A stretch of DNA of 64,000 nt from Macrostomum hystrix (lineage: Eukaryota; Animalia; Platyhelminthes): NCBI GenBank assembly GCA_950097015.1, contig CATNEN010000009.1, forward strand, positions 434,001 through 498,000, written 5' to 3'. Position numbers and translations under genes: made by a program. Below are positions 45,501-50,904 of this stretch, in pieces. The notes beneath the pieces were generated by a model, which saw nothing but the letters and a program-made list of their open reading frames with translations, searched no databases and was not told where the DNA came from. How positions within the stretch are numbered: position 1 is the first letter of the stretch; each line of letters starts with the position of its first letter.

Positions 45501-46258
45501 GCGGAGGAGGTTGACGCAGTTTTGCCCCTGCCTTCGCCAGGAGTATCGCCAGGGCAAATTCGAACAACACGGAGGCCGGCGGGCGCATCCTGGTTGAGCT
45601 GGCGGGCTCAGCGGGTTCCAGGTGCGACTGTGAGACGGACGCGAGCTGGCTGATTCGTCTTGACACTGAAAGTTTATAAGCGACTGATAATTATTCCCAT
45701 GTTTATCCTAACTCTAGCTAAAATAGTTCCAAACGAGAAACTGAAAACCTTGTATTCTTAATTTTTACAGTGTGCTGCGTCCATGATGAATTGCAGAAGC
45801 TGGAAAACAGACCGATCTGCAAGCCACATTATTAGCCAGATCGATCCGGCGATCCCGCGCATGGGCGTCGTGCCGCTCTTTCTGAAGCACCTGCTGCAGA
45901 GTCACCCGGGCGGGCAGGTTTGGGCAGACTGCAGTCTCAGCGCCCCATCAGCAATTCGCAAGACGCTCTGCAGGTTGTCGCGTGAGGCGTCACTCGGTAC
46001 GTCAACAGGAATGCCGGTCCTACCCCCTGAAGTAAGAACTTTCAACGCTTTCAACTCGGTGGCCTTTGACGTACTGTCTCACCTGCTCCGAGCTTAGATT
46101 ATACGAATCTGTATAATGCACGTGATGCTAAGATGCTTAACAAAGCTTTTGAAAAAACACGCGGTATATGAGAACAGTTTACTTCGTAAGCACCATGATT
46201 CTGGAGGCAAATATGACGATATTTCTACAACTGAATATGTGATCATTTTCCTCGCCCG

Positions 46259-49105
46259 TCAGCCGATGCAACAGTTTCTGTAGCGTCTTCGAGCAGCCGA
46301 TTTTAAGCAGCAGTTCTGCCCAGCAGTTCTGGCTGTGAAGCAGGGTTGGAAAATGTCAGAACACACTTTTAGAAGCATAGTTTGAAAAAATACGAGTAGT
46401 TCGTAAATAATTTGCTGTATTGAGCACAAATTTACGGATGAAGACATCAGCCGCATTAGCTTTCTCCGAGTCAGTTCGTGCTCCATGATGGTTCGGTGAT
46501 GAGTTTGAATGACACTGACCAGCTGCTCATGATTAAAACAGTAGTTCATGACCATGGTAAGCTCCTGTACGTCAGTGTCTTTGCTCAGCCCCACTTCGGA
46601 GTGTCATGCGGTGTCCCTTTCGATATTTAGACCTAGGTGTTCTACTATTAAGCACTTCTTAAGTGAATCGAAGTTGACGAAGAAGAAATTTTTTAAAGTT
46701 GTTCCTCTCTGTGGGAAACGTCTGCCCAACGAAGCCGTCGTCAGAATACAGTTCAGGACGCTGATTGTGATGTAGGCTGAACTTCGAGGCCGAGTCAGTT
46801 CCTTCAAGCTGTTTCCACAGAGCTTCTCTTGTTGCTTCTCCCGACATTAGTACCTCTCGACCACAGATACACTTTCGATGCTGAGCAGAGCTGCCTTGGC
46901 TTGTTCCACGCGGCCGAATTTCAGGTTTCAGCCATCGCTTTAAGAGTCTCTCGCGCCGTTAGTGCACAGTTTGGAAACCTTCCAATGCTGTCAATCAAGC
47001 CCTTCAGTGAGAAGGTTTTGACGAGGTTTCGATCTGCAAGTTGCAAGAAGACGTTTCTGACCGCGTCATGGAGCTCAAAGTATTGATAGCTTCTAGACGG
47101 TGTTTTGAATTTAAACCATGGGTTAGTAATGTTTAGAAATGGTTGGAAGTAAAATTTCTGGTCATCCAGCGGCTTGAGGGAATGAAGGTCGTCAGATGAC
47201 CATCCAGGACCTCGATCGAAGTATTCACAACATTAGCGCTTTTCGACTTGCTATACTCGTAGCTCCCACTTTTCAGTACACGGCTGCATCTCGCAGGAAG
47301 TAGTGTTTCATGCAAGCATCATCACCGAACTCGCCACCACTCAGTTGTTCGTACAGCATCCACAGCGACTGTTTCGTCAAGTATAACAAATTTTCGGATC
47401 GCCAGTCTGCTTGAGGCGTCGTTTCTAGAATGTAAAACACGATGCACTTTGCATGGTATGTTTTAAGCCCCTTCCCCTTCTCACGAATAACCTTCTTGAT
47501 GAGGTACTTAAGCACTATGAACAATTGGCCCTGCGAGTCCATGAGACTGCACATGAGGTGCCCCTCCAAAAAATTAGTGCTCACTCGAAGCTGCCTGCCC
47601 GACAGTCCTGGCGGTGCCGTTGTGACCAAATGACAGGGCGATTCTCGCAAGAGACTTGCGAGTGGCTCGAGAAGCGATTTGGGTTGGTGACTTTCTGGCT
47701 GATGTCCGATTTGCATTCTCGGGCTGATACTTGATCCAGTTGAGTATGAGTGCGGAGATGAAGCATATCCCTCAATGACCTCGATGTAAGGATAGCTGCA
47801 ACACAGGTAAGCGCTCACCAAGTCAAAGGCAGGCATGAGAAGCGATCCGTTCACTTGCTGGGTTTCTTTAAGTTTCTATAAAAAAGCGAACCTGAGCCCG
47901 AGGCTTCTACGTGGCCATTTTTTTAGTGAGCTTTCTCTTCGTCTCTCCCATCGCTGCACTTGCACCGTCCTTCAATACTCGTATTATAGAATCTGTCAGG
48001 CACAAACTCGGTCACGTCAATGTCGGAGTCCGCATCCGTTCTTCCAGAAAGCTGACAGAGACTGTTGCCCCATCCTTCAGAGAAGCTGCCCACAAATAAT
48101 TTTGCTTTCTTTCCCATTTGCTTCCGTTTGATTTCCTGCATGACACAGGCGGATATATAGCAGTGTTTCCGACCGGTCTCTTATATCGGAATGCTTTAGA
48201 AACAACTCAGCTGCAGCAGCGCTCCCAAATAAACAAGCGGCCTGCAGAAGAGCGACCATAACTTTCTGCTCGTAGAAGCTCGTTGATTTATATTGGAGCC
48301 GTTAGCCAGCAGCAGGCGAGTTGCAGCGAATTTTGACGCGACGATTGCACCAAAAATCGGCATCCAGCCGTCCCTGCTAGGGAAATCGACATTAGCCTCA
48401 ATGTTGATGAGTATCTTCATTATCTTGGTATGGCCATTTCGGGTTGCAGAGAACAGTGGCGTCTCGTCATGGGCGGCTCAAGATTGTCAAGATTTTCACC
48501 CGGTCGAGCCAGCTGCTTCACCACTTCTAAGTGGCCATAGGTGGCCGCCACAGACAGCGCCATTTCTCCAGGGTGTCGCTGGCGGCTAACATCGGCCCCA
48601 GCTTTGATGAGCTGTCGAACCACCAGATCGTGTCCTTTCTCAGAGGTTGCAATCAGAGGCGTCTCGTCCTTGTCTCTTGTGAGCTCGAAGTCAGCACACG
48701 AGCTAATCAAGGCTTTAACAATGCGCACATGACCATTCACGGAGGCGATCAGGAGTGGAGTTGCGCCGCTAATTTGCCGAAGGTTTACGTCCGCTCCGGA
48801 GCAAACCAGCTCTCTCACGACTTCAAGGTGCCCATCCTGCGCAGCAGTGTAGAGGGGAGTTGAGGCGATAACTTTCTGCTGCAAGTCGACATCAGCTTGG
48901 GCCATAATTACTGATATAAAAGTATCACCAGGTGGAGGTGACCGTTCTGGCTAGCCGCAAGCAGGGGCGTGATTCCGTTGCTATCGCGCAGATTCACATC
49001 AGCGCCGACTTTGATGAGCCGATTAACCGCGTCCGCTCGCCCGAGATTGGACGCGGATTGTAGACTAAATGCCGCTCCATTCATCATCTCAGCTGCATTG
49101 AGCAT
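46259..49105 (-). pseudogene. Intronless ankyrin-repeat (~8) + Mab-21/cGAS-like nucleotidyltransferase (cGLR) gene with a helical C-terminal extension, disrupted by multiple frameshifts and stops
   Basis: ANK repeats (TPLLAASQNGH, TPLYTAAQDGH, TPLLIASVNGH, TPLFSATRNGH); NTase VGSFSEG...SDIDV and FDLV; Mab-21 C-lobe CHLV...LRVS...E..L...LKYL...KTYHAKCIVFYILE...W...NLL...HYFL. At least 8 frame disruptions. Confidence 0.85.
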
Positions 49106-50150
49106 TGAGTTGTGACTGGCTGCTCGTTTGGGCGCGCAAAATCCACCTATACTAAATCTTTATTGGAATTCAAATTCAAAAAGGCGCCAAACCTAACCTA
49201 CTGACCAAAACTACTAAACTACTAAGCTTTTACAAATAGCACTTACGGGTAAAACTTATACCCAAACGAATACAAATCTCATTCAAACGAAAGGTATGTA
49301 GTCCACTTCTAAATACTTAAATTCACTTTGAAATTAAACTGCACGGTTAAGTGTACTAATAGTTAATTTTTATTTACTTGCGCCTTTTTAACACAAAATT
49401 AAATTCAAAATATTCTCAGCGTTCTATAATTCTAAACATTACAGGCTGCTTCCGAGAAGTTTTGTTATAATAACTAGACAAAAACTAACACCGGAAAAGC
49501 TTAGTATTTAATAAAATCATTTGGCGGAATAGTAGACCAGCCCAAAGTTGTGTTGAGAATGCCGGAATGAGGTTCGCTAAAATGACAACATTGCAGTACC
49601 CATAGCTGAGGCTTATTCGATTCTACTATCGTCTACTAGTGTGTAACAATGAGAATGACTGGCGCAGTTGCCAATATGTTCCTGTATTCTGATGCGCTTT
49701 GAAAATTTGCTCATAAGAACAGTATTTAGCAGAAATTATGTATCGAAGTCAACAGTGAGTATCCAAAAATTACATGATCATCACTAAAACTCAAACTACA
49801 GAAACGCAACCAGCATATTACACTTTTCAGATGGATTGTGGGAGCCAAGAAATTTTGTGCCAGTACTTAGCATTCTATTCTGCAGTCGTGCCATGCCCAG
49901 GTGACATTCAACTGGCAAACTAAGTTCCGTCATCCTTGAATTCTTTGTAGAAAATTTGCTAATTGCAAAGCTGCAGCTTGAAAGAAACGCAAGGAATTCA
50001 TACTCAACTCAGTTAGTATCTCATGAATAATTTCTGGTCGCTGAGCTGAGTAACTTGACTAAAAATTACGGCATAGAAAAATTTGGTTTGAGAGCGCCGC
50101 TCGCCAGCTTAAAAGCCATTGTCAAGTAACTTCTCCTCATTTGGGCAGCC

Positions 50151-50904
50151 ATGGAGGCGCGTGATGTGTTGCTCATTCAGGTAATCTCAATCATTTCCCT
50201 GCAGACTCTATGCAGCTTGCAGTGTCGAAAAGTCTACTCAGAAGTGAGCAACGCTTCACTGTGCATCGCAGGCGAGTTTATCCGCACAATGGGCAACACC
50301 ACAACAGACCTGCAGTGCTCGCTTCAGTGCGGTAGAGAGCCGCACTGCCAGGCATTCACCACTGCTGACGGTCCGTGTCAGCTGTTCGTGTTCGACAGGT
50401 GCAGCAAGTCGGTGAGAAACTGCAGCTACTCAAGGAGAGGCCGCCTGTTCGTGAAGCGTCAGCCGGGACTCGATCCGGGGGCGCTGTGTCCGTCTGGCTT
50501 CGGTGACGATCTGTACGGAGTGATGTACAATTACTTGTCCAACACTGATACTTGGGCCTCGCACAAGATGAAGTGTGAAACAAGTGGCGGACTCTCTATG
50601 CTCGCCGACGTAACTGACAGTGTAGAAATGAACCACTTGAACCAGCTGTTCAGTAAGTATGGTTCAGCGGCCTTTTTTCTCGATGGCCGGCAACTTGCCG
50701 GCAGCTCGGAGCCTTCAGGCGGCTGGTTTTGGTCTGGCTGCAACATTCCGCTGGATGGCAGTCTGTGGGCTAACAATGAGCCTAACAACGCTTTTACTGG
50801 CGAGAACGTCACAATCCGGGGTATCAGCCAGCCTGGATTGGGGGACGCCAATCCCGAAAGCCTGAAGAGGGGGTCTCTGTGAGTGCGTCTCACATTTTGA
50901 CTAG
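50151..50904 (+). CDS. Secreted PAN/Apple + C-type lectin protein, paralog 1; a 1-bp extra G at 50869-50873 shifts the last 11 codons (error or pseudogene)
   Basis: Signal peptide, PAN-like Cys pattern (CSLQCGREPHCQAF), CTLD with WANNEPNN. Removing one G restores RGLCECVSHFD* as in the paralogs. Confidence 0.8.

Follow-up and report, generated by a model that had tools for sequence, protein, structure and literature searches.

In the survey of Li et al. 2023 (PMC9980059), cGAS-like receptors (cGLRs) are recognized by the motif h[QT]GS X8-20 [DE]h[DE]h X50-90 h[DE]h, together with homology over both lobes of the nucleotidyltransferase (NTase) and predicted structural homology. Fusions of such enzymes with ankyrin (ANK) repeats, the ANK-cGLRs, are a listed domain class in that work and were described there in coral, and rows 89-93 of its Table S3 contain five members from the flatworm Macrostomum lignano (PAA86972.1, PAA45980.1, PAA57558.1, PAA93208.1 and PAA68676.1), which were cloned without the ANK array. 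The main text of Li et al. 2023 does not mention Macrostomum, we found no activity report for the five constructs, and a literature search combining cGLR with Macrostomum returned no paper; the link was found through the supplement. Here we analyzed a locus of this class on the minus strand (49105-46259) of a 64,000-nt window of the Macrostomum hystrix genome (contig CATNEN010000009.1, 434,001-498,000). The window is the whole stretch of DNA that was analyzed, and all coordinates below refer to it unless a contig is named. Our results indicate that this locus is very probably a transcribed, non-processed pseudogene of a Macrostomum-type ANK-cGLR family, whose intact members presumably act as cGLR-type sensors. 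A preliminary description of the locus had proposed an innate-immune receptor of non-canonical architecture, in which the ankyrin array may detect a protein ligand or keep the enzyme inhibited. The data point instead to a decayed pseudogene, with frameshifts, stops and splicing that removes part of the enzyme core, and the architecture is already known, as a listed class with five M. lignano members.

Domain remnants and broken reading frames

Translated from stop to stop, the minus strand from 49159 to 46262 yields a string of open pieces in alternating frames. We searched pieces and exons apart and judged the joined reading by frameshift-aware alignment. Along the locus, eight ankyrin repeats are followed by a Mab-21/cGAS-like NTase and a tail of ~300 aa. 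The Pfam matches and the motifs located in the pieces show that the domain order and motif coordinates of the preliminary description were correct; its ~8 repeats, C-lobe and ~300-aa tail were also recovered by paralog alignment, and its parts do lie in different minus-strand frames. The features of the locus, in the direction of transcription, are as follows.

49297, minus strand: 5' end of the RNA, where contigs of sequencing runs X3 and X4 stop and continue as what we take to be the reverse complement of the end of a SMART template-switch oligo
48199-49105, minus strand: remnant of the ankyrin array, eight repeats, from Pfam matches and frame-by-frame reading
48154-48198, minus strand: weakly conserved segment joining the ANK and NTase parts (linker), interrupted by in-frame stops at 48198-48196 and 48183-48181
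47892-48153, minus strand: remnant of the NTase N-lobe exon, with GSFSEG and SDID and an in-frame TAA at 47925-47923
47876-47891, minus strand: 16-nt relic of the phase-1 intron of the family, with GT, pyrimidine tract and AG kept and the interior deleted
47276-47875, minus strand: NTase core and C-lobe, 200 open codons, with the third catalytic Asp (FDLV) and the Mab-21_C match
47425-47584, minus strand: cryptic 160-nt intron, GTGAG...TCTAG, with 47424 joined to 47585 in contigs of runs X2, X3 and X4
46400-47275, minus strand: remnant of the family-specific helical tail, from alignment to the single C-exon open reading frames (ORFs) of four paralogs
46333-46435, minus strand: another cryptic intron of 103 nt (GT..AG), removed in only part of the X3/X4 contigs
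45749-46261, minus strand: 3' untranslated part, from the X2 contig; the last open piece stops at 46261-46259

The first three open pieces are ankyrin repeats: 48905-48420 matches Pfam Ank (E 1.5e-24) and Ank_2 (E 7e-23), and 49105-48908 matches Ank_4 (E 4e-8). Read along the frames, eight repeat units were counted from 49105 to 48199, and the ATG at 49105 is the probable ancestral start codon. Reading the sequence directly, we located GSFSEG at 48090-48073, SDID at 48027-48016 and FDLV at 47826-47815, exactly where the preliminary description had placed them; the first two lie in the open piece 48180-47926. In terms of the cGLR motif, VGS (48093-48085) is followed after 20 residues by DIDV (48024-48013) and, ~55-60 codons later, by FDL (47826-47818), with V in place of Q/T before GS as throughout the flatworm family. 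The motif does not lie within one reading frame, because DxD and the third Asp are separated by the TAA at 47925, by the relic of the intron (16 nt) and by a frameshift. Homology spans both lobes: the N-lobe piece aligns to family N-lobes, and the C-lobe piece (47875-47276) aligns to Pfam Mab-21_C (E 1.3e-4, 22.5 bits, slightly below the Pfam cut-off of 24.1). The N-lobe exon alone gave no Pfam match, neither for the window copy nor for a paralog; compared with N-lobe exons from paralogs and from M. lignano proteins, it shows 42-50% identity, and the family consensus of those exons is VGSFSEGWGNSL..DSDIDV.

We also searched the genome from which the window comes (220 Mb in 42 contigs), and the homology of the window pieces to a large paralog family proved to be far above chance. 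The C-lobe piece matched at least 146 places (best paralog 54% identity, E 1.8e-39) and is 44-58% identical to more than 140 paralog matches, and the piece with GS and DxD matched 131 places (best paralog E 5e-17). Most of the paralog matches lie in stop-free open frames of 430-600 aa, and intact paralogs, which the preliminary description had expected, are present both in this genome and in M. lignano. Inspection of 23 paralog loci gave a common gene plan, in which an ankyrin exon is followed by an N-lobe exon of ~140 aa, a phase-1 intron and one large exon encoding the rest of the NTase and a tail of ~260 aa; in some paralogs, e.g., L002, the ankyrin and N-lobe exons form one. At the DNA level the window locus is single-copy, as paralogs match it only in motif-sized stretches (~55-150 nt, 71-82% identity). 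We could therefore rule out a recent duplicate as well as a transposon or repeat element.

Each of these exons is one open frame in intact paralogs, yet it aligns to the window only across frameshifts. In total, the locus carries ~8 frameshifts and two in-frame stops in conserved coding sequence (47925 and 46606), with two more stops in the linker. In the ankyrin array the frame changes near 48932-48915 and 48477-48465, and the repeat units run on seamlessly across these changes; frameshift-aware alignment of the single ANK plus N-lobe ORF of paralog L002 to the window required shifts at 48932 and 48477. The TAA at 47925-47923 lies inside the N-lobe, immediately ahead of the family-conserved NGHV motif. 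Directly after the NGHV..G motif, all inspected paralogs (intron position was compared at loci L002, L004, L008, L012, L016, L017, L018, L021 and L024) have a phase-1 GT..AG intron of 60-600 nt, exactly at the position of the relic in the window. The 16-nt relic is too short for splicing, and the window RNA contig reads straight through it. A further frameshift lies near 47860, 3' of the relic.

The large exon is a single ORF of 430-600 aa in paralogs; its alignment to the window passes through four or five frames in turn and includes a stop. The alignment follows frame 1 to 47276, frame 0 to ~47184 and frame 2 to ~46927; after a short uncertain stretch it continues in frame 0 from ~46865 and in frame 1 from ~46700, and it meets the stop at 46606-46604. 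The tail frameshifts were thus placed near 47276, 47184, 46927, 46865-46889 and 46681-46723. Tails homologous to that of the window copy occur in all paralogs; the tail of the window copy was aligned with four paralogs through 46400 and with 18 family tails. Its motifs are recognizable, some of them mutated at family-invariant residues (FHPF to FQPF and DSAWKF to DSASKF). One frameshift-aware alignment, with paralog L006, gave an extra frame excursion at 47808-47683, which we took to be an artefact, given that frame 1 in this stretch fits the family consensus PAxDxV..CC.YP.

Transcripts, cryptic splicing and a second haplotype

Public sequencing runs were aligned to 45800-49500 as assembled contigs, from which neither allele frequency nor expression level is derivable. 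A 3155-nt contig of run X2 covers ~45749-49063 and shows 0 differences from the window apart from a skip of 47425-47584. The ANK and NTase parts therefore lie on one transcript, and the same fusion occurs in paralogs and in M. lignano, which bears out the earlier treatment of the two parts as one gene. The contigs of runs X3 and X4 contain none of the repairs required for an open frame. Neither assembly error nor RNA editing can account for the breaks, since all frameshifts and stops of the DNA recur in the transcript contigs. Indels introduced by the assembly were also ruled out by an independent contig that is identical over 3.1 kb, and unrecognized short introns behind the frame changes were ruled out because the changes lie within single paralog exons and RNA and DNA are colinear. 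This colinearity extends across the linker, so that the linker stops are present in the RNA as well. At the 5' side, the extra letters at 49297 are presumably the end of the template-switch oligo, and other contig ends presumably represent Nextera adapter sequence. Based on these joints, we consider the runs to be cDNA and the RNA to start near 49297.

Both skipped segments start with GT and end with AG on the strand of the gene. The 160-nt intron excises the conserved LKYLIKK..GLKTYHAK helix of the Mab-21 domain and shifts the frame. The same segment (47425-47584) is coding in all paralogs, and its acceptor tract stems from substitutions specific to the window copy. The preliminary description had stated that there are no introns; this needs correction, as it missed the relic at 47891-47876 and two cryptic introns, one of 160 nt that transcripts remove and one of 103 nt that some of them also remove. 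In both the unspliced and the spliced transcript models, the longest ORF has 176 codons. Given that no ORF exceeds 176 codons and that cryptic splicing runs through the enzyme core, the locus would yield no receptor and no nucleotide signal.

The X3/X4 contigs also revealed a second haplotype. Compared with the coding remnants of the window, it shows four synonymous, six nonsynonymous and one nonsense change (48229), and it has deletions of 1 nt at 47113 and 3 nt at 46497. In addition, it carries 55 other letters in place of 47796-48143, where GS, DxD and the third Asp are located. Taken together with the mutated family-invariant tail residues, these changes make constraint on the locus look relaxed.

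Two further observations were made around the transcript. Short contigs from X2 and X5 with high word depth (107 and 229) have only the 33-nt GSFSEGWG-coding stretch at 48062-48095 in common with the locus and continue beyond it into dissimilar sequence; these are transcripts of a far more highly expressed paralog, not of the window locus. In the neighborhood, a cysteine-rich ORF of 243 aa (50151-50882, plus strand) begins ~850 nt from the RNA start of the pseudogene, in head-to-head orientation, and therefore the two may share a bidirectional promoter region.

Proposed history and alternative explanations

We propose the following history for the locus. The ancestral gene would have encoded ~945 aa from the ATG at 49105, comprising the ankyrin array, a cGAS-like NTase and the helical tail. 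It would then have accrued the ~8 frameshifts, the two stops in conserved coding sequence and the two linker stops, and an internal deletion would have shrunk the conserved intron to 16 nt. The promoter still fires, giving RNA from near 49297, and this RNA is spliced at the new cryptic intron, with part of the enzyme core cut out.

Several points weigh against a pseudogene. That the samples are RNA rather than DNA was deduced from adapters and splice joints, not from records. As assembled contigs only were used, an isoform in the correct frame or an intact allele might have been lost if it was rare. The intact stretch of 200 codons and the three intact catalytic motif positions mean that the decay is not ancient.

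Among the alternatives, we considered that the locus is dead as a coding gene, but that its transcript, or a 65-codon ANK-only peptide starting from the ATG at 49105, has taken on a new role, e.g., as a regulatory RNA directed at the paralogs or as an ankyrin decoy. The defined RNA start and the splicing in at least two haplotypes are in keeping with such a role. However, there is no evidence of conservation, and the second haplotype carries both large and small disruptive changes. The DNA similarity to paralogs, ~55-150 nt at 71-82%, is poor for RNA-RNA targeting, and a 65-aa fragment of two repeats would be unlikely to fold stably. We therefore regard a new role as unlikely. A more specific form of this idea, that the dead copy stays transcribed because its RNA or ANK-only peptide modulates the large ANK-cGLR family, e.g., as a decoy or by giving rise to regulatory RNA, and that the copy-specific cryptic intron belongs to this role, seems very unlikely.

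It is also conceivable that the locus is a working ANK-cGLR gene, and that what look like breaks stem from assembly indels, unrecognized short introns, programmed frameshifts or RNA editing. The catalytic motif residues are intact, one frame of 200 codons is open, the locus is transcribed, and the paralogs do have short introns. On the other hand, independent contigs match the window base for base at all breaks, the RNA is colinear with the DNA there, and the frame changes lie within uninterrupted exons of every paralog examined. Moreover, the sole efficient splice excises conserved coding sequence and shifts the frame, and more than 10 separate events would each have to be rescued. A working gene is thus highly improbable.

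Finally, a processed (retrotransposed) pseudogene, which would account for the missing introns and for the contiguous ANK and N-lobe parts, has next to no probability, since a 16-nt relic with GT, pyrimidine tract and AG exactly at the conserved intron site points to a deletion inside the intron rather than to reverse transcription of spliced RNA, the nearest paralogs L002 and L003 also lack an intron between ANK and N-lobe, neither a poly(A) tract nor an AATAAA/ATTAAA signal was seen at the 3' end, no parent of high identity was found in the DNA search, and the locus has its own active start site.

As a decaying pseudogene, the window locus matters little in itself, being one member of an already catalogued family. 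It does document birth-and-death turnover within a very large flatworm cGLR expansion (at least 146 matches in 220 Mb), and thus shows that immune-type genes of this sort come and go quickly. In addition, it offers a clean example of how a gene is dismantled, in which an intron has collapsed to 16 nt, part of an exon has become a cryptic intron, and a disruptive deletion still segregates.

Comparison with cGAS and known cGLRs

To place the family among solved structures, a family profile of NTase-plus-tail sequences, including both window pieces, was searched against the PDB. It matched cGAS-like receptor 1 (8gjy) with an E-value of 1.4e-6 and cGAS with ~8e-6. For AlphaFold2 modelling we took the intact M. 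lignano homolog P0002:290-890 in place of the broken window copy, and the model had a predicted local distance difference test score (pLDDT) of 90.3 and a predicted template modelling score (pTM) of 0.91. Its best Foldseek matches were cGAS and Crassostrea cGLR1 (E 3e-8, probability 1.0, template modelling score (TM) 0.51-0.58 by target), so that the cGAS fold suggested by the preliminary description was recovered in an intact homolog. Judging from the 39-46% sequence identity to that homolog, the predicted fold would carry over to the window copy.

The tail was also modelled alone (P0002:629-890; pLDDT 89.6) and is predicted to be mostly helical with few short strands. Foldseek against the PDB gave no usable relative of this fold (best E 0.48), and the ESM Atlas gave no usable match (TM <=0.50). 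In a wide VIA-align search the highest score was Z 7.9, reached on generic TPR/helical repeats, which lies in the noise range given for helical proteins. What had been called an unexplained helical sequence is a conserved family-specific domain, not a peculiarity of the window copy.

The preliminary description had also raised the question of a STING homolog. The flatworm phylum is said to be mostly without the pathway. A search of the genome gave one match only, an ORF of 337 codons at C2:9104028-9105038 (L025:1000-2010, minus strand). It matched Pfam STING_LBD, the ligand-binding domain, weakly but specifically over profile positions 3-145 of 182 (E 1.4e-5, 25 bits, below the cut-off of 27). 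All 14 of its weak PDB matches are STING proteins, and a look-up of the ORF in the protein atlas returned nothing. On its sequence, this STING-like protein is a candidate for a divergent receptor serving the cGLR family.

Within the genome, the nearest relatives of the window copy are the intact paralogs L002 (C10, 3.06 Mb) and L012/L014 (C37, 0.217 Mb), with 50-54% C-lobe identity. The window copy shares the exon plan with these paralogs, in which the ANK array occurs with or without a following intron. The two differ in that the paralogs keep large-exon frames open over 430-600 aa and an intron of 60-600 nt, whereas the window copy is frameshifted and its intron measures 16 nt. As side observations, L002 (C10:3059218-3062625) and L003 (C33:5293344-5296751) have identical scores and large-exon ORFs on different contigs, and may represent a very recent duplication or uncollapsed haplotigs. 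After each of them comes a tandem repeat of coding appearance; its ORFs in several frames read TAKLHLE...

In a word search with the large exon of a paralog, the only named relatives of full length were from M. lignano; these proteins measure 870-936 aa, carry Ank and Mab-21_C annotations and are ~45% identical. This result points most likely to a Macrostomum-type flatworm distinct from M. lignano as the source of the genome. Two database entries among the search results (P0008 and P0018) deserve mention. NCBI lists a 347-aa family member with 49% identity as part of a metagenome bin of a Kangiellaceae bacterium, and this is probably animal DNA contaminating that bin. In addition, UniRef gives the name 'Terpenoid synthase' to an M. 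lignano fragment that covers the tail only, probably a misannotation.

Compared with an M. lignano ANK-cGLR, e.g., BOX15_Mlig031899g1 (P0002, 890 aa), the window copy has the same order of ANK array, NTase and tail and is 30-46% identical in alignable parts. The window family and the M. lignano proteins have in common VGSFSEGWGNSL..DSDIDV, the third acid in PAxDxV and the LKTYHAK helix, as well as the tail motifs FHPF, PDCA.TARE.L, DSAWKF and NFDAL. The five M. lignano cGLRs of Table S3 likewise carry the same GS..DxD, LKTYHAK and FHPF motifs and the same tail. However, the family of the present genome, a different one, is only ~45% identical to the M. lignano members, and the window copy, unlike the M. 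lignano proteins, is without a continuous ORF, has lost the conserved intron and is mis-spliced.

At a greater distance, the window family shares the GS / DxD / D motif with human and mouse cGAS and with Crassostrea virginica cGLR1 (PDB 8gjw/8gjy). Unlike cGAS, it carries an ankyrin array at the N-terminus and ~260 aa of helical domain at the C-terminus, and it has V where the cGAS/cGLR motif has Q/T before GS. The window copy, unlike the animal cGAS and cGLR proteins, appears to be dead. The ANK- and death-domain-fused cGLRs of the coral Stylophora pistillata show the same design in another phylum, namely a cGLR core joined to protein-interaction repeats.

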